The notes under the pieces: model-generated
Told to the model about the DNA's origin: nothing
The model's input: only the letters and a program-made list of their open reading frames with translations
Database searches by the model: none
In this document: positions 8,707 to 37,868 of the stretch, piece after piece
Numbering within the stretch: position 1 is the stretch's first letter
How the letters are laid out: each line of letters starts with the position of its first letter
Assembly (NCBI RefSeq): GCF_006345805.1
Contig: NC_043019.1
Coordinates: 310,001 to 374,000, forward strand
DNA from: Octopus sinensis
Taxonomy: Eukaryota
DNA: 64,000 nt
Direction of reading: 5' to 3'
Program-made: the position numbers and the translations under genes

Positions 8707-8749
<43 letters not shown>

Positions 8750-14756: not shown

Positions 14757-14805
<49 letters not shown>

Positions 14806-15510: not shown

Positions 15511-15648
15511 CAGAAATGGCCAGTGGCATGTACTTTTATAGCATGGACAAATACCGGTCAAAAATTCTTGATTGATTAAAATTACTTCCGTCTCTACAGC
15601 GCAGATAATTTGCATAACATAATTAGCAAATGGTAATTATGATCAGTA

Positions 15649-15833: not shown

Positions 15834-16327
15834 CTAAAATGAGCTAAGAAAAAAGGAAATTCGTAGCTATTTGAATAAAATAGACACATACAAGTATATT
15901 AAATAAGCTGCAAGAAAAAATTTTGATTCATTAAAATTATTTCCGTCTCCAGAATATTTATTATAAAATTACCAAACAGTAATTACGACCATTACAACTT
16001 GAGAAAGTGGCGCTGATATCTAGATTAAATAATTGCAACGAAGCGTGGCTGTGTGGTAAGTAGCTTGCTTACGAAACACAGGGTTCCGCGTTCAGTCCCA
16101 CTGCGTGGCACCTTATATATATATATATATATATATATACACCCCCACACACAGGATTCTTTAGGTTTCCGTCTAGTAAAATCCATAACAAAGCTTTGAT
16201 GAGGCTTGGGCTTATAGTCAAAAACACCTAAGGTACAACATGATTGGGTGAGAAGCAAACTCTTTAAAGAAACAGCCACGCCTGCATGTATCATGTAAAT
16301 ATGTAAAATATATGAATGAATTCAAAC

Positions 16328-16427
16328 CTTTGTAATAATCTGGTAAAGCCACCAAGTCAATTTTTTCTAGATTAGGAATTTTCTCAGAGAAATATTTCTG
16401 CATTTTGTTTCTGAAATCAACAGCCAG
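16328..16427 (-). CDS. Exon 7 of M1 aminopeptidase: LAVDFRNKMQKYFSEKIPNLEKIDLVALPDYYK(G)
   Basis: Acceptor ttttctttcttatag|, donor AAAG|GTTTGA; 100 bp, phase 0 to 1. Matches YF..PYPLPKIDLIAI.DF, just before the GAMEN motif. Confidence 0.9.
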
Positions 16428-16887
16428 CTATAAGAAAGAAAACATTTAAATAAAACTCATTAGTTTAAATATTAAAACAGTTTTCACTGAATCATTTAAA
16501 GGAAGGGCATAGTAAACTATTTCTTCTTAGCTGTCTACTGGTTCCATTCACTGGTTTGCAGCTATGCTGGGGAACCGCTTTGAAGGGCGCTTGAGCTTCG
16601 AAAAAATCGACACCATGGCATTTTTTAAAGTCTAGTACTTATTCTATTGGTCTCTTTTTTTGCCGACTCAAAAAGTTACGTGGACATAAATAAACCAATA
16701 GCGGTTGTCTAGCCGTGGATAGACAGACGTAAGAACATTTATACATATCTATATCTATTTTTATATACGCATGTAGTTTAATGCATCCACTCATCTGCTC
16801 ACCTATACATACCTATACTCTTCCATATCTATATACAGAAGATGTATAGAAGCTGTCTGTCTGGCTGTCTGCATACATGCATGTAGT

Positions 16888-17210
16888 GAGGGCGCGTGGC
16901 TTAGTGGTTAGGGGCATTCGGCTCATTATCTTAAGGTTGTGAGTTCGATTCCCGGCGATGCGTTGTGCCCTTGAGCAAGACACTTTATTTCATGTTGCTC
17001 CATCCACTCAGCTGGCAAAAATGAGTAATACCTGTATTTCAAAGGGTTAGCCTTGTCACACTTTGTATCACGCTGAATCTCCCTGAGAACTGCATTAAGG
17101 GTGTCTGTGTCTGTGAAATGCTCAGCCACTTGCACGTTAATTTCACGAGCAAACTGTTCCGTTGCTCGTATCAACTGGGACCCTCGTCGTCGTAACCGAC
17201 AGAGTGCTTT
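16888..17210 (+). mobile_element. SINE family B variant
   Basis: Head GGCGCGTGGCTTAGTGGTTAGG, CCTTGAGCAAGACACTT core, shared 3' tail. Confidence 0.82.
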
Positions 17211-17302
17211 TATATATTCATAAATATATATGACAGCCTTCCTCTCAAATTCACAATTCATTCACAAGGCATTGCTTTATGTGTCGTTGAGAAAATACTC
17301 AC

Positions 17303-17485
17303 CTTCAGTGCACAGTCACCCAAATGGATATTTTCTGAACACGAGTGGATTTTAATTAAAGGTTTAACATCATTGCATCCCTCTTCTTTTAGGGTTTTGA
17401 AAGGTCCAAGAACCATACGCAATTCTTCAGGCTTTGAAAATATGGCTGTTTTAAAACTGACATCTCCATCATCAGACACTCGAGG
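17303..17485 (-). CDS. Exon 6 of M1 aminopeptidase: PRVSDDGDVSFKTAIFSKPEELRMVLGPFKTLKEEGCNDVKPLIKIHSCSENIHLGDCALK
   Basis: Acceptor ttttatattacag|, donor AAG|GTGAGT; 183 bp, phase 0-0. The end aligns with NPEPPS GKFALE. Confidence 0.88.
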
Positions 17486-17717
17486 CTGTAATATAAAATA
17501 AACTATAAGAAATAGGGGCGGAAATCTGGTTTAAGCCTCCCATATATCTCTACCCCACCAGCTTCTTTGTTTTTTTCGAATTTTCAGAAAATTTTAGCAA
17601 ATTTTTTTTTCTACACGTGAATTCATACGATTATGAAAAAAGGACAAAACAGTTTTGATGGGACTTAAGGGCTGTTTAGCCATTATTTTTTAGAACATCT
17701 GCGACCACCTAATACCT

Positions 17718-18131
17718 ATTCCTTTACCACCCACAAGGGGCTAAACACAGAAGGGACAAACAAGGACAGACAAACAGATTAAGTCGATTATATCGACCCC
17801 AGTGCGTAACTGGTACTTATTTAATCGACCACGAAAGGATGAAAGGCAAAGTCGACCTCGGCGGAATTTGAACTCACAACGTAACGACAAACGAAATACC
17901 TATTTCTTTACTGCCCACAAGGGGCTAAGTACAGAAGGGACAAACAAGGACAGACAAACAGATTAAGTCGATTATATCGACCCCAGTGCGTAACTGGTAC
18001 TTATTTAATCGACCCCGAAAGGATGAAAGGCAAAGTCGACCTCGGCGGAATTTGAACTCAGAACGTAACGGCAGACGAAATACGGCTACGCATTTCGCCC
18101 GGCGTGCTAACGTTTCTGCCAGCTAGCCGCC
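17718..18131 (-). mobile_element. SINE family A plus one extra tandem 3' unit
   Basis: Full head near 18131 followed by two 3' segments. Confidence 0.88.
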
Positions 18132-18544
18132 TTACACCGTCATCGTTTATTTGTCATCGTTTGTTTGTTACTCTGATATTTTCCAATATTTTTCTTTCTA
18201 TAAACACACTTTGGTGCGATTTAAGGGCTGTGTAGTTGTTATTTTTAGCACATCTCACAACCATCTAATACCTTCATCGTTTGTTTGTCACTATGATATT
18301 TTCCAATATCCCTATAAACACATTAAATGGTCCATTTCTGGGATTTAAACCCAAAATTCTGATTATCTGTATTTTAAACTCTGATTTGTATAAATCTTGT
18401 GTATATCTTTAATGCTTCACTCGTTTCAGTTGTTTGACCGCGGCCATACTGGAGCATAGCCGTGAAGAGCTTGTAGTCGAACGAATCGACCCCAGTGCAT
18501 ACGTTTTATCACCGGTACTTATTCTATCGGTCGGCGAGTTTGTA

Positions 18545-18950
18545 AAAACATTAGCACGCCGGGCAAAATGCTTAGCAGTATTTTGTCTGCCGCTACGTTT
18601 TGAGTTCAAATTCCGCCGAGGTCGACATTGCCTTTCATCCTTTCGGGGTCGATTAAATAAGTACCAGTTACGCACTGGGGTCGATATAATTGACTTAATC
18701 CGTTTGTCTGTCCTTGTTTGTCCTCTCTGTATTTAGCCCCTTTTTGGGTAGTAAAGAAATAGTTATTTCGTCTGCCTTTACGTTCTGCGTTCAAATTCCT
18801 CTGATGTCGACTTTGCCTTTCATCCTTTCGGGGTCGATTAAATAAGTACCAGTTACGCACTGGGGTCGATATAATTGACTTAATCCGTTTGTCTGTCCTT
18901 GTTTGTCCTCTCTGTGTTTAGCCCCTTTTTGGGTAGTAAAGAAATAGGTA
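18545..18950 (+). mobile_element. SINE family A plus one extra tandem 3' unit
   Basis: Junction AAAGAAATAGTTATTTCGTCTGCC near 18760. Confidence 0.85.
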
Positions 18951-19324
18951 CTTACTAAATCGGTCATTATTGCTGAACTGCTATATTACGGTGATGTAAA
19001 CACACTAACACAGGTTGTCAAGCTGTGGTGAGCATATACAGACACGCACAAATACACACATGTATGCATAGTGTACCCACATGCAACAAGCGAGAACAAC
19101 ATGCCAAAGAGAACCCGGTATATATAGTAAGGTATCTTTTTTTAACACCAAGGACCTCAAGTGACACAGTTTGCACTGATTTATGCAACACAACTAGGTG
19201 CACAATATCCAACCCTTAAGGGACAGCTGCAGGATGGGTCGCAACGCTCGTCGTGCTGAATAAAGGTTCGTATTAAATCCATCTTCCATTTCGTTCATCA
19301 ATTATATACTCTCTCTATATAAGA

Positions 19325-19550
19325 GCTGCGAGCTGGCAGAAACGTTAGCACGCCGGGCGAAATGCGTAGCCCTATTTCGTCAGCCGTTACGTTCTGAGTT
19401 CAAATTCCTCCGAGGTCGACTTTGCCTTTCATCCTTTAGTGGTCGATAAATTAAGTACCAGTTACGCACTGGGGTCGATGTAATCGACTTAATATCTCTG
19501 TCCTTGTTTGTCCCCTCTGTGTTTAGCCCCTTGTGAGTAGTAAAGAAATA
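19325..19550 (+). mobile_element. SINE family A
   Basis: Full-length match. Confidence 0.85.
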
Positions 19551-20201
19551 TATATACTCTCTCTCTCTCCCTCACACACACATGGCTTCTTTCAGTTTCA
19601 GTCTATCATCCATTCACAAGTCTTTGGTCGGCTGGAGGCTATAGTTCAAGACATTTTCGCAAGCTGCCGTACAGAGGGCCTGAACCCTGGACCATGCGGC
19701 TGGGAAGCAAAGTTCATATCACCAACCACGCCTGCATACACACAAAACACACACACACACACACACACACAACTGTTCACTATTTTTGCCTGCCTCTTTC
19801 TGCTTACACGGTTTGAATTGATAGATGGTTTAAAATACAAGGTATACGTCCAAGATGGCATTCGGTGAAATCGGAAATCGAAACAGCGACCTCGTGGTGG
19901 CGAAGCGAACTTCTAAACCAATCGTCCATCAGTTTGAAGATCTTTTATTTTTTATGAAAGACACGCATGCAATTCAGACATACTGCACGTCTGAGGTAAC
20001 TTGATCGCCTGTGAGGTTTGATAAATTAAACGTCCAAAACGCACTCAAACCACATCCCGCCGCTCTCAAAGAAGCTGTACATTTTAGATAAAGTGGGTTG
20101 GTTAGAACAACGCTTTCAAAAAGAAAAAGACACGGAGAAAGTTCTGCTAGATAAGGAAAGAACTGGCAATAAAGTAGTCTAAAAACAAAAGCAATGAAAT
20201 A

Positions 20202-20650
20202 GGATCTTTTCGGTTTAAACGGCAGTTTTTAACATAATTTCTAGGTAACTAAAAAATTTTAAACTTCGTATACTGGTAGAATGTGTTTATAAAACATCTT
20301 TTTCTCTTGGCTTTATTGAGAAAATTCTATAGTTTGTAAGATATTTGTTGTTTTTTTTTCTTCAATTTCTGCAATTTCAACCAATCAATTACGTCCATTG
20401 AGGTAAAAAAAACATTTTGTGCCGTATGAATATGTCCCTCGTTTAAGAAACAGGTTGGGTTTATTTACATTTGTGAAGAAAAAAATATACCCTTCCCCCC
20501 ACCCCTAACCCTAACCCTAACCCTAACCCTAACTAACCCTAACCCTAAAACAGATTGAAATGCAATAGATCGATACTAGGGTCATAATTATGGGTGACAA
20601 TTTCATATGACACCGCTAGAAAAAAACTGCCGTTCAAACCGAAAGGATCC
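20202..20650. mobile_element. Same MITE family, with internal CCCTAA repeats
   Basis: TIRs; TSD ATGAAATA (20194-20201, 20651-20658). Confidence 0.92.
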
Positions 20651-20729
20651 ATGAAATATATATTACTAAAATATCTGAGTTTATTTTTATAAAAGAAATT
20701 CTAACGAAAGTCAATTTAAGAGAACATAC

Positions 20730-20834
20730 CATGTTTGACAGAGCGGTATAACCTCGTGGTGCATTCATAGTTACGTTGCAGTAGACTGGGCCGACCGATC
20801 TCAACGTTGGAAAAACTTGGTAGTAGCCTCCATT
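20730..20834 (-). CDS. Exon 5 of M1 aminopeptidase: NGGYYQVFPTLRSVGPVYCNVTMNAPRGYTALSNM
   Basis: Acceptor ctatcttcag|, donor ATG|GTATGT; 105 bp, phase 0-0. FP and the ALSNM motif of M1 peptidases are retained. Confidence 0.9.
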
Positions 20835-21214
20835 CTGAAGATAGATATTTGAAAAATGTAAATAAATATAAAATAAATATAGATTAAATATATATCATAA
20901 CGATCGCCATACTAGTGCCAAATCTATCTTCCGTTTCCTTCACCAATTATTCAACAGCAACAATAATAATAATGATTTCAAATTTTGGCACGAAGTCGGT
21001 AATTTCAAGGACCGGGGCAAGTTGATTGCATCGACCCCAGTACTCAACTGGTATCTATTTTATCGATCCTGAAAGGAGGAAAGGCAAGGTCTACCCCTCG
21101 GTGGAATTTGAACTCAGAACATAAAGATGCGAAAAATGACGTTAAACATTTTGCCCGACGTACTAACGATTTTACCAGCTTGCCGTTTTACTCCTCCTCC
21201 TCCTCCTCCTCCTC

Positions 21215-21271
<57 letters not shown>

Positions 21272-21552
21272 AAATGATCCTTTCTGCTATAGCAAAGCTT
21301 GTAAATTTTTGGAGAGGGATAAGTTGATTACAACTGGTACTTAATTTATCGACCCCGAAAAGATGAAAGGTAAAGTAAACCTTGGCGGAATTTGAACTCG
21401 GACTAGTTGCAGACAAAATAGTGCTAAGCATTTCGCCCGGCATGTTAACGGTTCTGTCAGCTCGCTGCGTTACTACTACTGAAATAATCCTTTTCTACGC
21501 TAGGCACAAGGCCTGAATACAAACCATTACTATATATATATATTATATATAT

Positions 21553-21587
<35 letters not shown>

Positions 21588-22599
21588 TGTTATATTTCGG
21601 AATGGTCATATTGCCAGTTTAGCCAATAAAACACACGCACTATATTTTGGTGTATTTTTGCTTCAGTGTTATTTATTTTTTACATTAAACTTAATCTTAT
21701 TTTGGCCAGAGTTCTTCGTCACACTCCTGTGACACGCATCAGTGGTCCTTTGTTTTCTTCTTAATTATTTGTGTCTCTCCTTACTAACCGTCAGCCATTT
21801 TGTATTTTATTGTATGTCTTCATTTGCGCATGCTTATATCTCTAAACTGGCAATATGACCATTCCGAAATATAACAATATCTGTTTCAACACACGACTTC
21901 ACATAAAAAATCTTGCACAACAAATATTTAAAACGTACTATACACACACACACACACCACACACACACACACACACACCACACACACACACATATATATA
22001 ATATATATATATATATAATAATATATATATATATATATATAATCTGCTTGGTGCTGATACTGCTATTACCCTGATGAGAGTCCAACCCATAAAGAAATTT
22101 TTTATAAATCATTATTGCGTATGAATCTATACAATTGTAGGACAGTTTATTACATTATAGCGTATTATATTAGTATAATTATATTATAATGTTAATAAAT
22201 TTAATTTATATGTCAATCGTATATCTCTATTTTCTTTTAAGCTTTATATATATATATACACACACTTACGTATACGCTTACAGTTATCCACAGATTGCTG
22301 TAAGAACACAGAGTTGCTTGATGTCTTTCTTTAACAAATAAATATTTATCGGGTGGTCACCCCTGCTGGCTTTAGGTAAATAGCGACATTAGTTTCAACA
22401 TGTTTAATACAAACACTAGTTGACTAGAAATAATTATGCCGTGAAGAATAGACGACATTATTCAACGAAAGTACGTGGAAGTGTTCTGCTAATGCTCTTA
22501 TTATGATCTCATCAGCGAAGCATAACCTTCACATTATATGCTAAAACAATGAAGAAAATATATATATACTTGTAAACTTACATTGTGATATGGATTCTT

Positions 22600-22975
22600 T
22601 TACTTTGACTTGTTTCCACTATTTGACTGCGGCCATGCCGGAGCACTGCCTTGATGGGGTTTTAGTCCAACAAATGAACTCCAGGTCTTATTTCTGAAGC
22701 CTGGTGCTTATTCTATCGATCTCTTTTTGCCGAAACGCTATGTTACGGGGAAGTAAACATACCGACCCCAATTGTGGCACGGTGATGGGGAGACAAACAC
22801 AGACAAAAGCACACACACACGCATAAATATACGCACAAGCATACACATACACATAGTTACACATACACACAGAGGCTATTATAGAAGACACTTGCTCAAG
22901 TTGCCACGCAGTTGGACTGAACCCAGAGTCATGTACTTGGGAAGCAAGCTTCTTATTACACAGCCACGCATGCGC
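22600..22975 (-). mobile_element. SINE family C, diverged
   Basis: Reverse match. Confidence 0.7.
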
Positions 22976-23075
22976 GGACAAAGAGAATGCTTTTAGAAAA
23001 TAAATTCTTCAGATATACCATGTGCATAAAATATAGAACTAACAAAGAAACATTAATTCAATCTTGACATATTTT

Positions 23076-23502
23076 GGATCTTTTCGGTTTGAACAGCAGT
23101 TTTTTCTAGCGGTGTCATATGAAATAATTATGACCCTAGTATCGATCTATTGCATTTCAATCTGTTTTAGGGTTAGGGTTAGTTAAGGTTAGTTAGGGTT
23201 AGGGTTAGGGGTGGGGGGGAAGGGTATCTTTTTTTCTACAAAAATGTAAATAAACCCAATCTGTTTCTTAAACGAGGGACATAATCATATGGCACAGAAT
23301 GTTTTCACCTCAATAGACGTCATTGTTGGGTTGAAATTGCAGAAATTGAAGAAAAAACAAAGACAATATCTTACAAACTATAGATTTTCTCGATAAGCCG
23401 AGAAAAAGATGTTTTATACACATTCTACCAGTATAACAAGTTTAAAAGTGTTTAGTTACCTAGAAATTATTTTTAAAACTGCCGTTCAAACCGAAAAGAT
23501 CC
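23076..23502. mobile_element. Same MITE family
   Basis: TIRs; TSD CATATTTT (23068-23075, 23503-23510). Confidence 0.92.
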
Positions 23503-23811
23503 CATATTTTTAGTGTGAACTTGAAAACATTATGCTGTGCTAACTTGTGAAGTCGTTGTTAATATATTTTAGCTCATAAGGCGGCAAATCTAGCAGAATC
23601 ATTAGAACACCGGGAAAATACTTAGCGTCTTTTCGTCCATCTTTACGTTCAGAATTAAAATTGCTGCGAGGTCGACTTTACTTTTCATCACCTTCGTGGT
23701 CGCTAGAATAAGTACAAGTTGAGCACTGGGGATCGATGTAATCGACTTACCTCCTATTCCGAAATTGTTGGCCTTGTGCTAAAATTTGAGTCCAATATAT
23801 TTCAGCTTGTG

Positions 23812-24275
23812 GAGGCGCGTGGCTTAGTGGTTAGGGTGTCGGCATCATGATCGTAAGACGCGTTGTGTTCTTGAGCAAAACACTTCATTTCACGTTGATC
23901 CAGTCCACTCGTCTGGCAAAAAGGAGTAACGCTGCGATGGACTGGCATCCCGTCCAGCTCGGGAACATATACGCCATTGAAAACGAGAAACCAGGCCCAT
24001 GAGCTAGGCTTTAAAAGGGCGCAGTGGAGGCGCGTGGCTTAGTGGTTAGGGTGTCAGTATCATGATCGTAAGATTGTGGTTTCGATTCCTGGACCGGGCG
24101 ACGCGTTGTGTTCTTGAGCAAAACACTTCATTTCACGTTGCTCCAGTCCACTCGGCTCGCAAAAATGAGTAATGCTGCGATGGACTGGGGTCCCGTCCAG
24201 CTGGGGAACACATACGCCATAGAAACTGGGAAACCGGGCCCATGAGCCTGGTTAGGCTTTAAAAGGGCGCATTTA
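23812..24275 (+). mobile_element. Two tandem SINE family B variants
   Basis: Two heads (near 23812 and 24025), both ending GGCTTTAAAAGGGCGCA. Confidence 0.8.
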
Positions 24276-24325
24276 TTTATTATTATATTTCAGCTTAGCT
24301 CATCACTGTGGAACTTAACAAAGAA

Positions 24326-24558
24326 TACCTATTTCTTTACTACCTACAAGGGGCTACACATAGAGGGTACAAACAAGGACAGACAGACGGATTAAGTTGA
24401 TTATATCGACCCCAGTGCGTAACTGGTACTTAATTTATCGACCCCGTAAGGATGAAACGCAAAGTCGACCTCGGCGGAATTTGAACTCAGAACGTAACGG
24501 CAGACGAAATACGGCTACGCATTTCGCCCGGCGTGCTAACGTTTCTGCTAGCTCACCT
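24326..24558 (-). mobile_element. SINE family A
   Basis: Reverse-complement full-length match. Confidence 0.85.
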
Positions 24559-24608
24559 TTTTTTTTACGGTGGTGGAGACGTCCTACGCTGCTGGTGTAT
24601 ATTAGCGT

Positions 24609-25098
24609 CGTCATGGCTGGATCAGGAACATGGTTGGCTGACTGGTCGTCTGTCGCTAGAACTGGAACATGGCTGAGTCGCTCGGTGGTCAGAGGTTAGT
24701 CCTGAAAAGGACTGGAACCTAAGACCGGTGTTGCTGGAACATGGTCTGTGGTCAGTGACTATACTTTAGAAAGTCTAGAGCCAAAGAATACCGTGTTAAG
24801 ATTCCGATGGTGTCCTTCGGAGCTAACATTTCAACTCAGCATTAGTTTACTCTAACAGTCATAACATTACTAAGATCTTAATTGAGATACGTTAATTGTC
24901 TCAAGTGATCTTATATGTTTCAGTGAACGAACGCAAGAATAGAACAAAACAGGACTTGAACCTCTGACTATCTAGATTATAGTTGAACACTCTTTCCCCT
25001 CGACTTTCTCATAATCAAAATGGCTGCTATTTTGACCGGTAGGCATTTTAAACGTGTGGCTGCTGCTTTGACTGGTAGGTTCTTCCATATACGTAACA
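24609..25098 (-). mobile_element. Possible solo-LTR remnant
   Basis: TGTTACG start on the minus strand and repeated GGAAC(A)TGG-like motifs; no clean TSD. Confidence 0.25.
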
Positions 25099-25960
25099 AA
25101 TGCCAAATCTCTCACAGAAGGATTTGAAATTAGAATTTTGTTCGAATTTTGTTCGATGCACTAACAATCTTGCTAAAACACTGTATTTTGTTTGTTAATA
25201 TTATCAGCGATAATAATAATACAACTCGGATAAAAACTCTAAATATAAAAAAAAAAACACAGCGAAAACGAAACAAGTAGACACATAGACCTTTCCACCT
25301 CTCTTCTTATCAGTCAGTACATACCTACATATGTGTATATACAAATATAATTGTGTGTATGTATGTATGTACATATATATTTATATATAATTGTATGTAA
25401 GTATATATATATATATATATACATACAATTGTATATGTACATATATACATATGTAAGTATATATATATATACATATATATATATACATATGAGTATATGT
25501 AAGTATATATATATATATATATATGTATGTAAATTGTGTATATACACATACATACATACAATTGTATATATACATATATACATATGTAGGTATATATATA
25601 TACATATATATACATATACATATATATATATATACATACATATGAGTATATGCAAGTATATATATATATATACGTGTAAATTGTGTGTGTGTATGTGCAT
25701 TTTCCAATTGATTCTACATTTAAATATATACGAAATAGATTCTATTTAGTGTCAAAATGAATTTTCCGCAATTAATTAGCTTTAAATAAATTGAGATTGA
25801 CAAATGAAATAGAAAGATAAAAATAATGACCGGACATACAAAATTATAAAATGAAAAAAAAAAAAAAAGAAAATAGAAAAGAACAGATGAAAATAAAATA
25901 GAATACAAACAATTACGGACAAAAAAAATAGTGGTGAGCGAGACAGAAAATAAAATTCAC

Positions 25961-26083
25961 CTTCAGATCAGCTGCAATTACTTTACTGTGACTGCTGTCG
26001 TTCTTAAATCTACCGAAGAATATTCCGCCATTGAAATAATTTACTCGTCCACCGTATGCCAACCTCAACTGACCATCGCCAAC
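25961..26083 (-). CDS. Exon 4 of M1 aminopeptidase: VGDGQLRLAYGGRVNYFNGGIFFGRFKNDSSHSKVIAADLK
   Basis: Acceptor ttttctattttag|, donor AAG|GTGAAT; 123 bp, phase 0-0, stop-free. Aligns with GTGTLKIDFVGELNDKMKGFYRSKY...AAVTQFE. Confidence 0.85.
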
Positions 26084-26959
26084 CTAAAATAGAAAAAAGT
26101 CGATGGGATTCATTGATTTCTTCATCATGGAATCGGTGTTTTTGGTAAAGGTGGGAAAGGTGAGCGAAAACGTAATAAATTGTTCAGCGATTTAACTAGA
26201 TTTAACTGAAATAAATTGCTATTGACTGCTGGTGGTAGGTACACAAATCACACACACACACACACATACGCATTTATATATACAGAAAAATCAATGGTAA
26301 TTATTTTGCCACAAAAGCTAGAATAAAATATTTACGTTTTAAGCAAATTTAAAATCGATGTAATCTTGACTTGTTTTCTCAAAATTCTTCAAATTAATTT
26401 TGTTCCCATCGATTGTATTAACAATAAATTTTTAATATCGAATATAAAAGCTGAAACTAATCCCTTTCTCCCTCTCTTTCTTTCACACACACACACTTTT
26501 AAAGTATACAAGTATATGTATGTGTGTTCATGTATGTGTGTTCATGTATGTGTGTTCATATATATATATATATTTTTTATTCAATGCTTATCTACATAAA
26601 TGTACGCACGCATATACATTAGTTTTTGTGAGTATGCGTGTCTCTAGGTCGGTAGCCAAAAGAAAGAAAAGTCTGCTCAACATTTATAGAAAGTAAATAT
26701 TTGTATCAAAAGTTTTGGAATTTAAGTTTGTATTACTTAGATTTACACTGACGTCTAAGCACTCTTGGTTAATCAAATTCTTTTGATAACATCTGAACAA
26801 TGAGGCATGTTTTTACACAATGGATATGCTTCCTATACAAAATAGAAAACAAGCTTCTGTCACCTTGCACTCACCAAACGAAATTCATTTTAAGAGATGA
26901 CCTGAACTTCAAACAAAGAGATGACCTGAACTTCGATAAGGAGCCAGGGAAGACAACAA

Positions 26960-27197
26960 TACCTATTTCTTTAGTACCCACAAGGGGCTAAACATAGAGA
27001 AGACAAAAAAGGACAGACAAAGATATTAAGTCAATTACATCGACCTCAGTGCGTAACTGGTACTTAATTTATCGACCCCGAAAGGATGAAAGGCAAAGTC
27101 GACCACGGCGGAATTTGAACTCAGAACGTAACGGCAGACGAAATACTGCTTAGCATTTCGCCCGGCGTGCTAACGTTTCTGCCAGCTCACCGCCTTC
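26960..27197 (-). mobile_element. SINE family A
   Basis: Reverse-complement full-length match, abutting a family B head. Confidence 0.85.
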
Positions 27198-28200
27198 CTT
27201 TTTTGGAGCAACGTGAAATGAAGTGTTTTGCTCAAGAACACAACGCGTGGCCCGGTCCAGGAATCGAAACCAGAATCTTACGATCATGGTGCTGGCACCC
27301 AAACCAGTAAGTCACGCGCCTCCACAGTGGGAAGATAACAATACACTAACAACAAACTACAAAAACCCAAACAAATACATGTAAATAGGATGAGAGCACA
27401 CAAGATTGAAAACGTCATAACAAAATGCAAACAACCAAAAGAGCATATCAAAATATTAATTACACCTATCACATCAAACATTAATAATTTAGTAAGAACT
27501 GTAGCCAGTTATACAAGTATACACACACATATACTAGAAAAAGTGGCTTAGGAAGGAAATATTTAAATATAGACATGCACGCATAAACATGTGTATATGC
27601 ATGTATACACCCATACAGGTCTTCATGTGAGAACGTTTACGCATATACGCATGTATAGTTAAGAAAGTTGTGTTCTATTTCAATATGCAATTCTAACTGG
27701 TTTCAGTTATCAATCTATCTGAATGTACGTACGTATATAAATGCGTAATAAACGCAACAGTACAGGACTTAGTAAATTAATTTGGTATCTAAAAAACAAT
27801 AATACACAATTTAATTTAGATTGGTTGATTCTCTCTATTTCATTCCCTTATGATAAAGGCAAAGAATTCTGCCAATTCTGTAATACTGAACTATTTTGTA
27901 TTCTTTTTTTCTAAGAATATCCTTGTAGACACGTTCATATAGCGTGCTTATCATTGGCAGAATTGATTTTCTTCTTACATTTCACTTCCACTCGATATAT
28001 CTATTTCCAAGCTTTTAAGCTTTTATTTAATTCACATATCGCTCCATATTTCTCATTTATTAGTTTTCTGCTTATTTCTTTCCTTTAACCCTCCTCTTTC
28101 TATACGCTAACTGTTTAAAAAAAACTTAATAGCATTCCGTTCATCATTATACACATCCATCCCATTCTGTTAAAATGTCTTATTAATGAGTTTGGTTTAT

Positions 28201-28299
28201 TTCTTTCTTTCCCTGATGAGAGGATTACATTGTTTTAGACCGCTTTATCCCTTTGGAAAACCAATGTTGTCTTCGAAACATATGTTGGAAATGAAAGAA
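28201..28299 (+). ncRNA. Type I hammerhead ribozyme (Penelope-type)
   Basis: Stem I TTCTTTCTTTCC / GGAAA(T)GAAAGAA; core CTGATGA (28213-19); long stem II GAGGAT..ACATTG / CAATGT..GTCTTC; GAAAC; palindromic stem III AC-ATAT-GT; NUH triplet GTT. Confidence 0.75.
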
Positions 28300-28384
28300 T
28301 TTGAATAATACCTGCGTTCAACTCCATTTATTTATTTATATATATGTGTATATATATGTATATATATATATGTGTATATATGTA

Positions 28385-28426
<42 letters not shown>

Positions 28427-28647
28427 TGTGTATATATATATATGTGTGTATATATATATATGTGTGTATATATATATATATGTATATATATATATGTGTG
28501 TGTGTAAGAGTTCGACTTTACATTTCATCCTTTCGGGGTCAATAAATTAAGTACCAGTTGCACACTGGCGTCGATCTAATCAACTGGCCCTCTGCGCCCA
28601 AAACTTTGGGCCTTGTGCCTAGAGTAGAAAAGATTTTATAATTTTAA

Positions 28648-29172
28648 GGCGGGGAGCTGGCAGAAACGTTAGCACGCCGGGCAAAATGCATAGCCGTATT
28701 TCGTCTGCCGTTACGTTCTGAGTTCAAATTCCGCCGAGGTCGACTTTCCCTTTCATTCTTTCAGGGTCGATAAATTAAGTACCAGTTACGCACTGGGGTC
28801 GATATAATCAACTTAATCCGTTTGTCTGTCCTTGTTTGTCCTCTCTGTGTTTAGCCCCTTGTAGGTAGTAAAGAAATAGGTATTTCTCCTGTCATTACGT
28901 TCTGAGTTAAATTCCGCCGAGGTCGACTTTCCCTTTCATCCTTTCGGGGTCAATAAATTAAGTACCAGTTACGCACTGGGGTCGATATAATCAACTTAAT
29001 CCGTTTGTCTGTCCTTGTTTGCTCTCTCTCTCTGTGTTTAGCCCCTTGTAGGTAGTAAAGAAATAGGTATTTCTTCTGTCATTACGTTCTGAGTTAAATT
29101 CCGCCGAGGTCGACTTTGCCTTTCATCCTTTCGGGGTCTATAAATTAAGTACCAGTTGCGTACAGAGGTCGA
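28648..29172 (+). mobile_element. SINE family A with about two extra tandem 3' units
   Basis: Junctions AAAGAAATAGGTATTTC near 28875 and 29065. Confidence 0.85.
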
Positions 29173-29356
29173 TCTAATCGAATGGCCCCTCTCCAAAAAT
29201 TTCGCATGTTGTACGTAGCGAACAAAAGAATATATTTTCTAAGTAGCTCTTTACTCAAAAATGAACTGTGAATTTAGGAAATTTTACTTGGCGCTTATTT
29301 TTTTATGTTATGATAATTTCCCTCCGCAGTTTTATTGCTCCTAAATTGATTAGAAT

Positions 29357-29677
29357 GAGGGCGCGTGGCTTAGTGGTTAGGGCATTCGGCTCATGATCGT
29401 AAGGTTGTGAGTTCGATTCCCGGCGATGCGTTGTGCCCTTGAGCAAGACACTTTATTTCACGTTGCTCCAGTCCACTCAGCTGGCAAAAATGAGTTGTAC
29501 TTGTATTTCAAAGGGTCAGCCTTGTCACTCTCTGTGTCACGCTGATTATCCCCGAGAACTACGTTAAGGGTACACGTGTCTGTGGAATGCTCAGCCATTT
29601 GCACGTTAATTTCACGAGCAAGCTGTTCCGTTGATCGTATCAGCTGGGACCCTCGTCGTCGTAACCGGCGGAGTCTT
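29357..29677 (+). mobile_element. SINE family B variant
   Basis: Near-identical to 16888-17210. Confidence 0.82.
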
Positions 29678-30763
29678 TTTTTAAAATTGATTAGATATTT
29701 TCGCTTTTAAGTACATCTTAACAGCACTGCTATAATTTCAGCTTAATTAAAACTAATTCTTTAATTATTATAATCCTTTAGAATTTGTCATAATTCAGCT
29801 TACACACGATCTGGGAAACGAAACAATGAAACAGAAAGAAAAAAAAAACAAGTGGTAATTAAAATAAATTGACAATGTATAGAAATATTTAATTGATATT
29901 TTTTTGTACCTGTCATAAACAAGATTCCAGCTTGCTAATTATTTATCTCTCAAATAATAATTAAGTCCGTTCCAAAAATATTTAACCTTAAAGTGGGTGT
30001 GTGTTCATCACGGAAAATTTCGTATTCCTGTTATGTCGTGGAGTTTGTTGTTTGATAGTGGTTAGGGTGTTGAACTCATGATCGTAAGGTTGTGGTTTCG
30101 ATTCCTGGACCGGGCAATGCGTTGTGTTCTTGAGCAAAACAACTTCATTTTCACGTTGCTCCAGTCCACTCAGCTAGCAAAAATGAGTAATCCTGCGACG
30201 GACCGGCGCCCCGTCCAGCTGGGGAATTTCTACGCCACTCAAACCTGGAAACCGGCCGTTATGAGCCTGGCATGGCTCAAGAAGGAACATGATCAAAGAC
30301 ATTCCTGCCGTAACAGTTCCATCCTTATAGTTCTGTACAGGACTACAATAGTCAATGCGTCTTTCGCTTATCTAAGCTGGTTGGGTGTTCATCTTGGAAA
30401 ATTTCACATTTCTGTTTGTGCCGTTGAGTTTGTTGTAGTCCAAATTCAGTATATCTATGATCAAAGACATTCCAGCCATGATAGTTCCATAGGACTACAA
30501 TAGCCAATGTGTCTTTCATTTAAATAAGCTTGTCGGGTGTAATTTGAAGGAGATTTGGCTACTATTTTCTGGCAGGTCAATCGACAACATAGAAGCTGTA
30601 TTTGATGAACAAGTGGTTATTTATGTCTGTTCTGTGTAAAGTGTCGGCCACTTATTCAAGCCGGTCAGGTTTGGTTTGAAGGAGATTTACCTACTATTTC
30701 TAGCTGGTCAAGCAAACACGTAGAAACGCTATTTGAGGAATAAGTTACTACTATTTTTGTTCT

Positions 30764-31082
30764 GGCCTGGTCTGGTTCTCCGTCTGTTTCGGCGACGAGT
30801 GTTCCAGCTGATACAATCAACGGAACTGCCTGCTCCTGAAACTAATGTGTAAATAATTGAACACTTCACAGACACGCGTACCCTTAACGCACTTCTCAGG
30901 GAGATTAGCGTGACAAGGCTGGCCACTTGAATTACAGGTACAACCGATTATTGCCAACTGAGTTAACTGGAGCAACGGGAAATAAAGTGTCTTGCTCAAG
31001 AACTCAACGCACCGCCGGGATTCAAACTCACAAGCTTATGATCTTGAGCCGAATACCATAACCACGAAGCAACGCGCCTTCG
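30764..31082 (-). mobile_element. SINE family B variant, diverged
   Basis: Reverse match, flanked by CTATTTTTGTTCT at 30751 and 31083. Confidence 0.78.
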
Positions 31083-31096
31083 CTATTTTTGTTCTA

Positions 31097-31478
31097 GTGG
31101 AGGCGCAATGGCCCAGTGGTTAGGGCAGCGAACTCGCGGTCATAGGATCGCGGTTTCGATTCCCAGACCGGGCGTTGTGAGTGTTTATTGAGCGAAAACA
31201 CCTAAAGCTCCACGATACTCCGGCAGGGATGATGGTGATCCCTGCTGTACTCTTTCGCCACAACTTTCTCTCACTCTTACTTCCTGTTTCTGTTGTACCT
31301 GTATTTCAAAGGGCCGGCCTTGTCACTCTCTGTGTCACGCTTTATCCCCAAGATACTACGTTAAGGGTACACGTGTCTGTGGAGTGCTCAGCCACTTACA
31401 CGTTAATTTCACGAGCAGGCTGTTCCGTTGATTCGGATCAACCGGAACCCTCGTCGTCGTAACCGACGGAGAGCTTCC
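31097..31478 (+). mobile_element. SINE family B
   Basis: TSD ATTTTTGTTCTA at 31085-31096 and 31479-31490. Confidence 0.88.
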
Positions 31479-31781
31479 ATTTTTGTTCTATGCAGGACTA
31501 CAATACCTGACGTGTCTCAGTTATCTAAGAGACTTTTCGGCATGCATAGAAAAACTCATGTCCAGGTCTGGTTATCGCAGATTATCTGTAGGCTAAAATT
31601 TAAGTTTTTTTATTGACAGTCGTTCGGTGATACACGGGTAAAGTGATTCATATCCTTCTACCAAATTGTGACTGTTAAGAATCAAGACACTGCAGGATAC
31701 GTCAGGATAAAATATCTTATGGACGTGTTGCGTTAATGACCAAATGGACTGCACAGTGAAGTGGAAAAGGATGTTACTTAC

Positions 31782-31861
31782 GTTGAGTTCGTACGGGAAT
31801 TTCAACGCGGCAGTTTCTGTTCCTTCGTTGATGATGACTTCAGCTTTTTGTTGTAACATAT
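31782..31861 (-). CDS. Exon 3 of M1 aminopeptidase: (D)[26 protein letters not shown]
   Basis: Acceptor ttttgtcgtag|, donor AAC|GTAAGT; 80 bp, phase 1 to 0. Resembles NPEPPS NEDEKVTLSFPSTLQ. Confidence 0.85.
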
Positions 31862-31914
31862 CTACGACAAAAGGTCAACATTGTGTGTTTATATGAAGTG
31901 CAAAAAAAAAAATA

Positions 31915-32237
<323 letters not shown>

Positions 32238-32450
32238 TATATATATATATATATATAGGGAGAGTTTACGAAAGAAACAACAAACGACGAAGACAGGTGG
32301 CGTACAAAACAAAAAGATGCATTAGTATAACGCTCAGGAATAGAAAAAGTCTTTTACGTTTCGAGCCTATGCTCTTCTACAGAAAGGGACACAGAAAAAC
32401 AAGGAGAGAAAAAAATATGTGTAGTGGCTAACGATCTATCATGGTGACTA
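32238..32450 (-). repeat. Penelope-terminus-like dispersed repeat with a minimal hammerhead-like motif
   Basis: Second copy at 33134-33330 and a diverged copy at 57550-57690. Confidence 0.6.
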
Positions 32451-32471
32451 TATAATATATATATATATATA

Positions 32472-32850
32472 TCTCTATATAAACGGCAGTTTGTCTGTGC
32501 GCTTTCTGTGTGTCTGTTTTCTCGTACCCTCACTCTGACCACGGCTTTCAACCGATTCTGATGAAACTTGACACACACATAGCCCAATGTCATAATTCAA
32601 AACTAACGCAGCGAAAATTTTGAAAAGTTCCCCCAGTTCTGAAAAAAATCGATAAATTCGACATGGGGTCGAGAATCAGAAACCCAAACCACAGACCGTC
32701 TAGGGGACGCAACTCCACCTTTTTTAACTCTCAAAAAATTTTACCATCATTTTTCCCCCATTTTTTTGCTATTTTTTGGCTATAACTCTCTAAAAATGCT
32801 TTATAGTTATTTCCCTTACAAACCTGAGCAACGCCGGGCGATACTGCTAG
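32472..32850 (+). mobile_element. Non-autonomous Helitron
   Basis: A|TC start, CTAG|T end, subterminal CGCCGGGCG hairpin, no TSD. Confidence 0.85.
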
Positions 32851-33100
32851 TATATATATTATATATATATTATATATATATTATAATTGATTTTGATATA
32901 ATCATAATTGTTAAGTTTTAAGTTTCTAGTTTGATAATAGAGTTTATTATAAGTAAAATCACTATATTATTTATATCTTAAAAATATTGTTTAAATATTT
33001 CTGATTATTTTTAAAATATTTCAATTAACCTGAAGATTGACTGTAACCATAACTCGAATTATTAATTGAATTTAAATTATATATATATATATTATTAAAT

Positions 33101-33137
<37 letters not shown>

Positions 33138-33521
33138 AGAGTTACGAAAAAAACAAAAGACGAAGGCAGGTGGTGTACAAACAAACAGATGTATTAGTAT
33201 AGCGCTCAGGAATAGAAAAAGTCTTTTACGGTTCGAGCCTACGCTCTTCTACAGAAAGGGACACAGAAAAAACAAGGAGACAAACGAGGAGAGAAAAAAA
33301 TTTGTGCATTGGCTAACGATCTATCATGGCATCTGACTCAGACTATATATATATCTTCGATTAGGTACGTGTTTTCGTGCCAATGAAATATTGAGTAATC
33401 GCAACTCCGGGTCAGTCCTACAATAGGCTGGTGTTATTTTTTCGTTGAAGAATGGTCCTTGTACTCTGAGTCGCTCAAAAAACGCATCAGAACTCGGATA
33501 AATTTCTGCTTCACGAACCTC

Positions 33522-33578
<57 letters not shown>

Positions 33579-33824
33579 GTTGTCTTACGCTGTTCATAAT
33601 TCCAGCTCTCCTTTAAAGCAATTTTGCTAGGACCATTTAAATATGAAGAAATAGAATTCTTTGTTGTTGGAATTTATTCCAATTTCCACCAGACCCGTAT
33701 CGGGTGCTGTGACAAAAAAGCTTTCTTTCTCACTAATTCACACTCTCACACACACTAAATCAAGCGGTATCTGCTTTGGATGATACTACGCTTTTGTTAG
33801 GGATTAATTCAAAGAATTACTTAC

Positions 33825-33900
33825 CAACGCCTGTGAAGTGAGCATCTTTGAAGAACAGATCTTTAGCCTTGAGTTCAATAAACTGCGTCGGTTGCTCAAC
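33825..33900 (-). CDS. Exon 2 of M1 aminopeptidase: VEQPTQFIELKAKDLFFKDAHFTGV(D)
   Basis: Acceptor ctcttactctcag|, donor G|GTAAGT; 76 bp, phase 0 to 1. Aligns with NPEPPS VRQATNQIVMNCADIDI. Confidence 0.85.
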
Positions 33901-34214
33901 CTGAGAGTAAGAGCAGAAGAGATATATCAAGTTTCTGTGGGCTAATCCTTTCATGGTTTATTAACCCCTTCTTAGACGACAACCTGGTTCCCTTCCCCGA
34001 TCAATACTTTCTATCTTTGATTCGTTTCTGTTATTTGATTGCAGCCACACTGGGGCGGCTGTGTGGTAAGTAGCTTGCTTACGAACCACATGGTTCCGGG
34101 CTCAGTCCCACTGCGTGGCACCTTGGGCAAGTGTCTTCAACTATAGCCTCGGGTCGACCAAAGCCTTGTGAGTGGATTTGGGAGACGGAAACTGAAAGAA
34201 GCCCGTCGTATATA

Positions 34215-34259
<45 letters not shown>

Positions 34260-34289
34260 ACAGCAGCAATTTTATTCAGGTGAATGCAC

Positions 34290-34480
34290 GTCATTGATTG
34301 GTTGAAATTACCGAAATACGACGAATTTAAGACGAAATAACTTTGAAAATACAAACTGTACTCGACAACACTAAGAATTAAAGATTTTTTATATGACACA
34401 TTCTACCAGTGTCCGAAGTTTGAAAGTGTTTAGTTACAAAAAATTAATTTCTCGATCTGCCGTTCAAACCGAAAAGATCC
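34290..34480. mobile_element. Partial related MITE (one TIR)
   Basis: Ends CTGCCGTTCAAACCGAAAAGATCC; interior is diverged. Confidence 0.6.
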
Positions 34481-35237
34481 GAAAAGATAAATTTTATTTT
34501 CCATTCAAAAGAATTAGCAAAAATTCTACCTGTGAACGCAACCCTAGTATGTAATTTCAAGGAACTTCAAAATATAAATTTATGATCCAAACCAAAAAGA
34601 AAAACAAAAGATGAATCAGATATTTATGATTTATATTCCAGTTTTTGATAAAAAAACCCCCAACTTATCTTAATATCTATCTATTACTCATGAAATGTAT
34701 TTTATTTTCTCCGAATTCTAACATCAAAGGACATTTTTGCAGTTATATTCGTCCGTACATTACTATATTATGCTTTGTTTAAGTAACACGCTCTGGTAAA
34801 AGTATATTGGTTTGAAATTTCGGCACAAAGCAAGTTCGAGGAAAGAGCCAGATCGATTACATCGACCCCAGTGTTCAACTGGTACCTATTTTATCGACTC
34901 CGAAAGGAAGGAAGGCAAAGTCGACTTCGGTGGTGTGGTAGAAATATTCTGAAATATTCTGAAATATTCTGACAATGTTCTTTATTCCTTACAAAACAAA
35001 GCTATAAAAAAGAAGAAAAAAACGGGAAGGGTTCGCCTTATCCTGCTAGAAATAATAGCCGAATCATCTCCAAATGACAATCAATCATCTATAATTAAAA
35101 ATTGCCAAATGACACGTAAGATAGTGTTATCGTAATAAGACTGCCCGAACAAATGACATGAAGATTACAACTGGGATTGCTTTAAATATAAATACATTTT
35201 CTAAGCGCTGATCCGGGGGTCTAAACAACAACAGCAA

Positions 35238-35445
35238 GTGGAGGCGCAATGGCCCGATGGTTAGGGCAGCGGACTCGCGGTCGGAGGATCGCGGTTTCAA
35301 TTCCCAGACCGGGCGTTGTGTGAGTTTATTGAGCAAAAACACCTAAAGCTCCACGAGACTCTGGCAGGGGTTTGTGGCGACCCCTGTTGTACTCTTTCGC
35401 TCCAACTTTCTCTCACTATTTCTTCCTGTTTTCTTGTCCCCGATT
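35238..35445 (+). mobile_element. SINE family B, 5' part
   Basis: Head matches 1192 and 31097. Confidence 0.75.
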
Positions 35446-35732
35446 TACTACGCAACCGCTGAGCCTGGATGCGCATTCATCCATCCATCCATCCATCGAT
35501 GCTCTCGGTGTCGGGGGTTGACCTGCTTTCTCTTCTGCGGGTCTTACGAATAGCAAAGGACAACGTTTCGGACTTCTCCCATCTTGCGAGCTCTGGGACG
35601 GAGACCGTTCGCTCAACAGCAACAGCAACAGCATCAACAACAACAACAAGAAGTATGACAATCTTAACCCTTTACCTGTCCTGTGTTTCACATATTATAC
35701 ACAGGGCATGTTTCCATGGCATCCATGTATCA

Positions 35733-36115
35733 TCTCTCTCTATATAAACGGCAGTTTGTCTGTGCGTGTTTCTGTGTGTCTGTTAGGTTGTACCCTCACC
35801 CTGACCACAGCTTTCAACCGATTCTGATGAAACTTGACACACACATAGCCCAATGTCATAATTCAAAACTAACGCAGCGAAAATTTTGAAAAGTTCCCCC
35901 AGTTCTGAAAAAAATCGATAAATTCGACATGGGGTCGAGAATCAGAAACACAAACCGCAAACTATCTAGGGGACGCAACTCCACCTTTTTTAACTAAAAA
36001 ATAAATTTACCATAATTTTTTTCCATTTTTTTGCTATTTTTTGGCTATAACTCTCTAAAAATGCTTTATAGTTATTTCCCTTACAAACCTGAGCAAGGCC
36101 GGGCGATACTGCTAG
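35733..36115 (+). mobile_element. Non-autonomous Helitron, second copy
   Basis: Closely similar to 32472-32850. A 3' end of the same type also occurs at 37501-37530. Confidence 0.85.
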
Positions 36116-36276
36116 TATACAATACATATGATTCCTGTTTTATTTCAACCACTAGAGTAATTTGGGATTTAGGAAAAGCAATGCTTTATTTTAATCAGAA
36201 CGTATGATTAAATGTAATACATTAAACATATTTCCCAGACGTTAAGACATCATAAATGTTAAACATTTTCAATTTT

Positions 36277-36845
36277 GGATCTTTTCGGTTTGAACGGCAG
36301 TTTTTTCTAGCGGTGTCATATAATTAAAAACATCTATAATTAAAAACTGCCAAATGACACGTAAGATATTGTTATCGTAATAAGACTCTGCCCGAACAAA
36401 TGACATGAAGATTACAACTGGGATTGCTTTAAATATAAATGCATTTTCTAAGCGCTGATCCGGGGTCACCCATAATTATGACCCTAGTATCGATCTATTG
36501 CATTTCAATCTCTTTTAGGGTTAGAGTTAGTTAGAGTTAGGGTTAGGGGTGGGGTGAAGGGTATCTTTTTTCTTCAGAAATGTAAATAAACCCAATCTGT
36601 TTCTTAAATGAGGGACATATTCATACGGCACAGAATGCTTTTTACCTCAATAGACGTCATTGATTGGTTGGAATTGCAGAAATTGAAGAAAAAAACAACA
36701 AATATCTTACAAACTATAGAATTTTCTCAATAAAGCCAAGAGAAAAAGATGTTTTATGAACACATTCTACCAGTATACGAAGTTTAAAAGTGTTTAGTTA
36801 CGTGGAAATTATTTTAAAAAACTGCCGGTCAAACAGAAAAGATCC
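36277..36845. mobile_element. Same MITE family, carrying a ~140 bp captured insert
   Basis: TIRs; TSD TCAATTTT (36269-36276, 36846-36853). The insert matches 35086-35220. Confidence 0.92.
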
Positions 36846-37766
36846 TCAATTTTTTCAACAACCAGATTAACTTTATGAAAGGAAAGCTTTAGATAACTAA
36901 GAACATATGATCCTATATGCTACACATGACGTATTTCTCTGGTGTCCATGCACCATAGAGTGGCTTCAAATTTTAACATAGAACCAGTAATTTCGGGGGA
37001 GAGGTTAAGTCGGTTACATCGGCCCCGGTGCTCAACTGGTACTTCTTTTATCGACCTTGGTGGTATTTGAACTCAGAACGCAAACTCAGAAGAAATGCTA
37101 TTAAACGTTTTCTCTCGGCGCGGTAACGATTCTGCCAGCTTGCCGTCTTATCCATGCATCATCTCTCTGTATTGAAGTCGTCTGTGTATGGCAGGTTTGG
37201 TAGCCTTTCACTAACACTATCTCCTCCAAGACCCTGCGGTGCAAGTTGACCAAAATTGAGAGTATGATAGAAGAAGGCTTGCTCTTCCTTCCGTAGAAGA
37301 AAAAAATCAAATCGGACCATGTTAACACCAAAAATTATTTATATCAAAAAGGTGCTTCTTTTCTATGAAAATCCCTATTTTTTTACTATTTTTTGACTGT
37401 GTATTTCAACCAGAAAAAAATGTTCACTTAAAGAGAATAACAAGCTACATAATGCAAAACTTTTACTTTTCAAAAATTCCAATGCTAAAGAGGCGAAACA
37501 AACCCGAGCAACGCCAGGCGATACTGCTAGTATATGATACGAATTCTCAATGAATTTTTTTTTCAGCTGCCAGAGTAATTCTGGACGTTCGAAAAGAAAA
37601 AAAGCTTTATATTAACCAGAACATGAAACAGTATCTAACTAAAATACTGAAAACAGACATGGACGTTTAGTAAAAAAAACTTGTGAAAATGCTTTGGACA
37701 AGCAAAGAGTTGAATACTTTTAGGAATAAAAAGAAAAATTCGCAACAAAACAGTATTTTTATTTAC

Positions 37767-37868
37767 CTTAATTTTTATATCTGCTTTCGCTTCAAAAGAA
37801 TTGGTGTTCAAATCCCAGTTGAAATTCAATTCGTATTTCTCAGGAACAACTATGATTGATTCAGCCAT
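37767..37868 (-). CDS. Exon 1 of divergent M1 aminopeptidase (NPEPPS-like): MAESIIVVPEKYELNFNWDLNTNSFEAKADIKIK
   Basis: ATG in AGCATGG context with an in-frame TAA 4 codons upstream; 102 bp; ends AAG|GTAAAT (phase 0). The P..Y.L....DL....F pattern matches the first strands of the M1 N-terminal domain. Confidence 0.85.

Follow-up and report, generated by a model that had tools for sequence, protein, structure and literature searches.

The window analysed here is a 64,000-nucleotide stretch of Octopus sinensis DNA (NC_043019.1, positions 310,001 to 374,000), identical to part of chromosome CM016881.1 of assembly GCA_006345805.1. Its minus strand carries the beginning of an annotated gene that is very probably a duplicate of NPEPPS, the gene for puromycin-sensitive aminopeptidase (PSA), which has lost its catalytic residues and is kept by purifying selection as a pseudo-enzyme. 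An earlier note, made from the letters of the window, had joined seven small exons with canonical splice sites into a stop-free frame of 256 amino acids and regarded them as a hidden spliced gene. Rebuilding the gene independently from the sequence gave the same seven minus-strand exons (37868-16328), which join into 769 nucleotides, that is 256 stop-free codons followed by a single base ahead of a GT donor. When 1.84 billion representative proteins were scanned exhaustively with HMMER, these 256 residues proved to be 100% identical to residues 1-256 of RefSeq XP_036368355.1, the O. sinensis "puromycin-sensitive aminopeptidase-like" protein of 833 amino acids; the next best protein in the scan was only 29% identical (E 4e-13). 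Mapping of XP_036368355.1 on the surrounding 87-kb locus (L001) yielded 22 coding exons over 67 kb, all introns being GT..AG, and the coordinates of the first seven were exactly equal to those of the rebuilt exons. The window model comprises exons 1-7 of 22, the 5' third of the gene, and is incomplete, not wrong. The gene is hidden only from the open reading frame (ORF) track, as RefSeq and GenBank already carry annotations of it from three Octopus species.

To follow the residues that carry out catalysis in active enzymes, we read their octopus counterparts from a HMMER alignment to human PSA, a seven-sequence MAFFT alignment and a 55-sequence alignment, and took the residue roles in human PSA from PMC10343166. 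The TQFE segment of the N-domain of PSA, which forms the S1 subsite and an anchor for the substrate N-terminus, contributes Gln178 and Glu180 as contacts to P1 and to the substrate N-terminus (PMC10343166). In the octopus protein it reads A124-D-L-K127 (Q125D and E127K), the Glu being reversed in charge to Lys, and the conserved N-domain motif ARRAFPCWDEP is replaced by GGYYQVFPTLRSV. The second anchor of the N-terminus, Glu319 of GAMEN, is lost in E257-Y-S-S-Q261. The HELAH motif, holding two zinc ligands and the general base (His352, Glu353, His356), has become S292-V-M-C-Q296 (H292S, E293V, H296Q), and the third zinc ligand, Glu375 of NEGFA, is Asp312 (E312D). Finally, the transition-state Tyr438 corresponds to Gln365 (Y365Q) in two independent alignments; in PSA, changing this Tyr to Phe lowers kcat 1000-fold (PMC10343166). 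Only 45 of the 127 columns conserved at ≥90% in 54 M1 homologues are kept. All catalytic substitutions are identical in O. sinensis, O. vulgaris and O. bimaculoides. Judged from these residues, the octopus protein is very unlikely to be a zinc aminopeptidase: the zinc-binding His residues, the general base, the third ligand, the Tyr and both N-terminus-anchoring Glu residues are all replaced. The earlier note had suspected altered or lost catalysis from the two N-domain segments; the exons downstream of the window add GAMEN, both zinc His, the general base, the third ligand and the Tyr to the losses. Two long matches that likewise lack both motifs, one from a metagenome (P0011) and one from a mite (P0092), were considered and set aside as unrelated degenerate M1 proteins, not relatives.

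Selection on the gene was estimated from the ratio of nonsynonymous to synonymous divergence (dN/dS, Nei-Gojobori) at the orthologous loci of O. bimaculoides (L002) and O. vulgaris (L003). Between O. sinensis and O. bimaculoides, 776 codons gave dS 0.1525 and dN 0.0256, a dN/dS of 0.168 (Fisher p 1e-19). The 256 codons of the window gave 0.115 (dS 0.1891, dN 0.0217), the degenerate catalytic domain (amino acids 201-440) 0.12 (dS 0.2311, dN 0.0276) and the C-terminal domain (amino acids 501-776) 0.33, the last from few changes (dS 0.0748, dN 0.0247). Comparison of O. vulgaris with O. bimaculoides gave 0.161 (dS 0.1524, dN 0.0245) and of O. sinensis with O. vulgaris 0.077 (dS 0.0197, dN 0.0015). 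All 19 exons common to the O. bimaculoides model are equal in length, with no indels and 95.4% nucleotide identity, while the introns differ two- to three-fold in size among the species and are full of indels. In all three species the introns are GT..AG throughout. These data bear out the proposal that the gene remains under selection to keep its frame and splice sites.

Among solved M1 enzymes, human PSA is the best match of the full protein (E 1.3e-73, 251 bits, aligned over residues 7-831), followed by ERAP1 (123 bits, 1e-34), IRAP and ERAP2 (about 100 bits, about 1e-28) and APN (≤72 bits). The N-terminal 256 amino acids alone rank IRAP before ERAP1 and ERAP1 before PSA, hence the placement next to PSA depends on the exons outside the window. 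The intron positions, compared with those of a canonical NPEPPS gene that was mapped and aligned from a limpet, Patella vulgata (P0188, locus L004), lead to the same relative. Phases of the first ten introns are equal in 10/10 cases (0,1,0,0,0,0,1,0,0,0); nine of the ten introns share their alignment column with the limpet intron, and the remaining one lies within three columns. The exon lengths (129/76/86/126/108/201/97/149/165/105 in limpet, 102/76/80/123/105/183/100/146/147/84 in octopus) differ by multiples of three throughout. An intron-poor wasp NPEPPS gene shares two of its three introns with the octopus gene. As a control, amino acids 53-285 of an APN-like gene of a crinoid fall within one tblastn match, an approximate result suggesting that the six N-domain introns are not generic to M1 genes. 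The segments ALSNM and KIDL(I/V)A(I/L)PD are retained as well. By its sequence and intron pattern, the octopus gene is a DNA-level duplicate of NPEPPS, in line with the derivation that the earlier note had proposed from NPEPPS intron positions.

A separate canonical NPEPPS is expressed in O. vulgaris, making the dead copy a paralogue, as the note had also supposed. This canonical protein is an 870-amino-acid transcript-derived sequence with 30 peptides in an ink proteome (PMC10142993 supplement, Cluster-58773.88130), annotated there by its match to oyster (PMC10142993). Its readable first 398 residues carry TQFE, ARRAFPCWDEP, GAMEN, HELAHMWFGN, NEGFASW and YCKGAS, so that it is motif-complete. 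A word-index search with this fragment found no octopus protein in a collection of 5.8 billion sequences, an index that may miss entries; the best matches, 61-63% identical, came from other phyla, and the proteins listed were all shorter than 700 amino acids. The canonical NPEPPS is either missing from the annotated octopus proteomes or was missed by the word index. A tree was built by neighbour joining from the N-terminal and catalytic part of the proteins; in it the dead copy branches off at the base, on a long branch and apart from all NPEPPS and APN sequences. The tree is dominated by this branch and says nothing on the date of duplication.

The two octopus proteins have diverged at very different rates. 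Identity between the copy and the canonical octopus NPEPPS amounts to 25-27% in the N-terminal and catalytic half, whereas the canonical protein is 53-61% identical to the NPEPPS of wasp, limpet and coral. A relative-rate test with a plant M1 outgroup counted 110 changes unique to the copy versus 21 unique to the canonical protein (p 7e-15). At the present dN, divergence of this extent would take about a hundred times as long as O. sinensis and O. bimaculoides have been separate, so that a burst of fast evolution would have come before today's constraint. The description of the gene as fast-evolving therefore applies to its past and not to its present. The change is unevenly spread: compared with wasp NPEPPS, the C-terminal domain is 31% identical (canonical pairs about 40%) and the catalytic half 26% (canonical about 53%). 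The closer resemblance of the C-terminal domain points to this domain, together with the remodelled cavity, as the working surface of the protein.

Membership in the M1 family, which the earlier note had proposed, was clear from profile searches. The 256-residue peptide scores 44.6 bits on Pfam Peptidase_M1_N (E 2.2e-11; gathering score 25.8) and can be aligned along its entire length (residues 6-254) to M1 enzymes of solved structure (E 1e-9 for IRAP). The full 833-residue protein scores 41.2 bits on the same model (cut-off 25.8) and 184.8 bits on ERAP1_C (cut-off 38.2; residues 501-808, outside the window), while the catalytic Peptidase_M1 model gives only 19.6 bits, under its cut-off of 27.7. 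An AlphaFold2 model built on the 55-sequence alignment is confident (mean predicted local distance difference test score 85, predicted template-modelling score 0.86), with low confidence only at residues 349-359 and 387-418. Foldseek matched this model over its whole length to PSA at the top (E 2.9e-52, template-modelling (TM) score 0.76), to closed ERAP1 (TM 0.87-0.88) and also to ERAP2 and IRAP. The protein is predicted from this model to keep the four-domain M1 architecture. It starts level with NPEPPS and lacks any N-terminal extension, suggesting that it may reside in the cytosol as NPEPPS does.

Within the window, coding exon 1 (37767..37868) encodes amino acids 1-34, beginning MAESIIVVPEKYEL, from an ATG at 37868-37866 to the donor GTAAAT, and an in-frame TAA lies three codons 5' of the ATG (37880-37878). 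Exon 2 (33825..33900; 76 nt; acceptor CAG, donor GTAAGT) encodes amino acids 35-59 plus one nucleotide, and equals exon 2 of the Patella NPEPPS gene in length and phase. Exon 3 (31782..31861; 80 nt), entered in phase 1, encodes amino acids 60-86, and exon 4 (25961..26083), encoding amino acids 87-127, ends with AADLK (25975-25961), the counterpart of TQFE. Exon 5 (20730..20834; amino acids 128-162) carries YYQVFPTLRSV (20825-20793) in place of ARRAFPCWDEP and keeps ALSNM (20744-20730). The end of the N-domain and the start of the catalytic domain are encoded by exon 6 (17303..17485; 183 nt; amino acids 163-223), and KIDLVALPD (16364-16338) by exon 7 (16328..16427; 100 nt; amino acids 224-256 plus one nucleotide). 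All four segments lie where they had first been read. All seven exons are on the minus strand; the six introns between them are GT..AG and the exon entry phases (0,0,1,0,0,0,0) are compatible. Exon 7 ends in phase 1, within the codon that specifies Gly of GAMEN in active enzymes and Glu257 here.

The remainder of the window downstream of exon 7 (1..16327, minus strand) is the 5' part of intron 7 and holds no coding exon. Intron 7 totals 17,572 nucleotides, and exon 8, with EYSSQ for GAMEN, lies 1245 nucleotides past window position 1. No GAMEN- or HEXXH-like exon was found in 1-16327 by tblastn with a human NPEPPS query, which served only as a lead for locating exons and whose single-exon matches were insignificant (E 1.7-57); none is visible there because exon 8 lies outside the window and intron 7 consists of repeats and a duplicated segment. 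A second copy of any of the seven exons was likewise absent from the 64-kb window. When single exons were run against Pfam, only exon 1 scored, matching positions 1-32 of Peptidase_M1_N weakly, and the signal appeared with the joined peptide. The score of the joined peptide, 44.6 bits on Peptidase_M1_N, and its 100% identity to a public protein are far from what chance would give. A chance chain of ORFs and an annotation artefact were both considered and rejected.

The 90% cluster of XP_036368355.1 also contains its isoform X2 (XP_036368356.1), O. vulgaris CAI9739623.1 (833 amino acids) and O. bimaculoides XP_014781587.1 (781 amino acids). The models of the three species have the same exon structure and come from different annotation sources, all of them computational. 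Isoform X2, which lacks Glu461, is accounted for by a tandem (NAGNAG) site, CAG|AAG, at L001 59983, the acceptor of coding exon 14, outside the window. This isoform and the concordant models hint, indirectly, at a gene that is transcribed and translated. In O. bimaculoides the model is shortened by read-through of the donor of coding exon 20 (ATTGAG|GTAATT; L002 31206-31382) into a stop after five extra codons, and the last two exons of the O. sinensis/O. vulgaris gene lie past the 3-kb flank fetched at the O. bimaculoides locus. For O. vulgaris and O. bimaculoides the entries bear the plain automatic name 'puromycin-sensitive aminopeptidase' despite the loss of all catalytic residues, which looks like a name-transfer error. 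Outside this cluster, no relative above ~30% identity was found in the protein libraries searched, including the 1.84 billion representative proteins. The word-index search missed sequences present in its collection, making its negatives uninformative: a rough four-exon concatenation returned nothing although XP_036368355.1 was present, and the full protein returned eight distant matches of ≤26% identity.

The data have to be weighed against the alternative that the duplicate is in decay, a pseudogene from which gene predictors have made a protein, with a frame still open from recent inactivation. Destruction of every catalytic motif and a catalytic Pfam score under the cut-off would be expected of such a relic; in addition, no transcript or protein match was found in the literature or supplements searched, and the O. 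bimaculoides model is shortened. Recent inactivation is, however, difficult to reconcile with the divergence: ~75% of the residues differ from any NPEPPS, yet 833 codons in 22 exons are free of stops and frameshifts in three species. By our own calculation, the chance of 256 random codons staying open is ~5e-6. The dN/dS of 0.17 with its Fisher p of 1e-19, the 19 exons of equal length amid indel-rich introns and the canonical splice sites likewise speak for a maintained gene, and the shortening in O. bimaculoides amounts to one donor read through in the model, with no lesion in the shared exons. We consider decay very improbable. Several points nevertheless weigh against the reading as a pseudo-enzyme. 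The dN/dS values come from only two informative lineages among three close species and cannot separate long-standing from recent constraint. Orthologues were not found outside the genus Octopus in protein libraries, which do not cover un-annotated cephalopod genomes. The peptides and accessions of the gene are absent from one octopus proteome and one transcriptome supplement, and we found no mention of the gene, its accessions or its peptides in the literature; IDLVALPDYYK and SVLQNDLFSLTFDSK are candidate unique tryptic peptides of the protein. Lastly, Asp at the third-ligand position could in principle, together with the Ser and Gln, hold a metal in another way.

This Asp312, the confident fold prediction and a catalytic domain whose constraint (dN/dS 0.12) equals that of the remaining protein are what an active peptidase, or another hydrolase using unconventional residues, would have in its favour. 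Such activity would have to dispense with the two His ligands and the general base, where Ser, Gln and Val now stand, with the catalytic Tyr, now Gln, and with both N-terminus-anchoring Glu residues, one of them charge-reversed to Lys. The C. elegans homologue MNP-1, with fewer losses, is already presumed inactive (PMC10368266). We regard residual enzymatic activity as very improbable. The remaining alternative is that the gene represents an old, separate M1 subfamily in which degenerate motifs are normal, and not a copy of NPEPPS. The neighbour-joining tree places it outside all NPEPPS and APN, and its identity to every NPEPPS is uniform at 22-25%. A basal position is, however, what long-branch attraction would produce, and among the 1.84 billion representative proteins nothing above about 30% identity was found outside the cluster, the closest matches lacking its substitutions. 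Moreover, PSA leads all other M1 enzymes of solved structure by over 125 bits and the intron pattern is that of the molluscan NPEPPS gene. A separate subfamily is accordingly very doubtful, and descent from NPEPPS followed by loss of catalysis and renewed constraint best fits the data.

We propose that an NPEPPS gene (MEROPS family M1) was duplicated at the DNA level, and that the copy lost catalysis, changed at about five times the rate of the canonical gene, above all in its N-terminal and catalytic halves, and then came under purifying selection. Its 833-residue product would most likely act as a non-catalytic binding or scaffolding protein, a pseudo-peptidase, probably through the comparatively well-conserved C-terminal domain and the remodelled substrate cavity. 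The analysis shows the gene structure, the homology, the loss of catalytic residues, the predicted fold and the selection; from these we infer that the gene yields a protein and that this protein lacks enzymatic activity and works through binding. A more specific version, which we think unlikely, is that after an adaptive burst the dead copy was recruited to an octopod-specific non-enzymatic job; it might serve as an abundant binding or structural protein, or as a decoy sequestering peptides or partners of active NPEPPS. Cephalopods have reused inactive GST and ALDH as lens crystallins. If such recruitment took place, the change of Glu to Lys127 would be a charge reversal creating a new ligand specificity and not simple decay.

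The surroundings of the exons are eukaryotic and AT-rich, with many microsatellites and SINE-like repeats. Tandem arrays of a ~184-nt unit occupy 3329-8242 (27 copies) and 12474-14283 (10 copies), with 94-95% matches, and fill intron 7; shorter arrays of the unit lie at 17711-18083, 18579-18947 and 28696-29179, with dispersed copies elsewhere in the window. An Rfam scan of the window, the 184-nt arrays included, detected no RNA family. Two directly oriented copies of a 3.4-kb segment (1-3400 and 9180-12544) are 97.3% identical and each is followed by a 184-nt array, as if about 9 kb of intron 7 had recently been duplicated in tandem. In O. sinensis this intron measures 17.6 kb, compared with 12.2 kb in O. 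vulgaris and 5.7 kb in O. bimaculoides. Upstream of the gene, the minus-strand ORF 44450-44788 gives a weak homeodomain-like HTH_32 match of the kind seen in transposases (22 bits, under the cut-off), and the minus-strand ORF 48839-49267 (142 amino acids) has no Pfam match; both look like mobile-element relics.

Lineage-specific dead enzymes are common, and the octopus gene opens no long-standing question. Its practical consequence is that octopus genome annotation and peptidase counts should treat it as a non-peptidase homologue. It also offers a natural example of one route to a pseudo-enzyme, with full catalytic loss, ~five-fold faster evolution and renewed constraint, and if partners are found it could show non-catalytic uses of parts of the NPEPPS scaffold. 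The known protein it resembles most, in sequence as in fold, is NPEPPS/PSA itself (human structures 8SW0, 9O5K), with the same four-domain architecture, length, start and exon-intron structure. The ERAP1_C domain is well conserved in the octopus copy, but the N-terminal and catalytic half is only about 25-27% identical, and counterparts of Gln178, Glu180, Glu319, His352, Glu353, His356, Glu375 and Tyr438 are missing. TAF2, a subunit of TFIID, also has an M1 aminopeptidase-like fold without catalytic residues and uses it as a scaffold. TAF2 is, however, ancient, pan-eukaryotic and nuclear, with a different C-terminal region, whereas the octopus copy keeps NPEPPS-specific segments and ERAP1_C.

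Another such homologue is MNP-1 of C. elegans, a matrix non-peptidase homologue of the M1 family that takes part in cell migration and in responses to toxins (PMC10368266). MNP-1 arose independently and is a matrix protein of the APN type; the octopus copy goes back to the cytosolic NPEPPS type, and its losses go further still, to GAMEN, the N-domain Glu and the Tyr. In a review of pseudopeptidases, yeast Tma108 is the single entry from M1; it has the M1 fold and is proposed to bind in a non-enzymatic manner (PMC11266112). Tma108 keeps HEXXH-18-E and needs its N-terminus-binding residue to bind nascent chains (PMC11266112), whereas the octopus copy has lost both, so that, unlike Tma108, it is not expected to bind free N-termini in the canonical way. 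With MNP-1 and Tma108, inactive M1 homologues were already known, and the octopus gene adds another, under names that imply an active enzyme.

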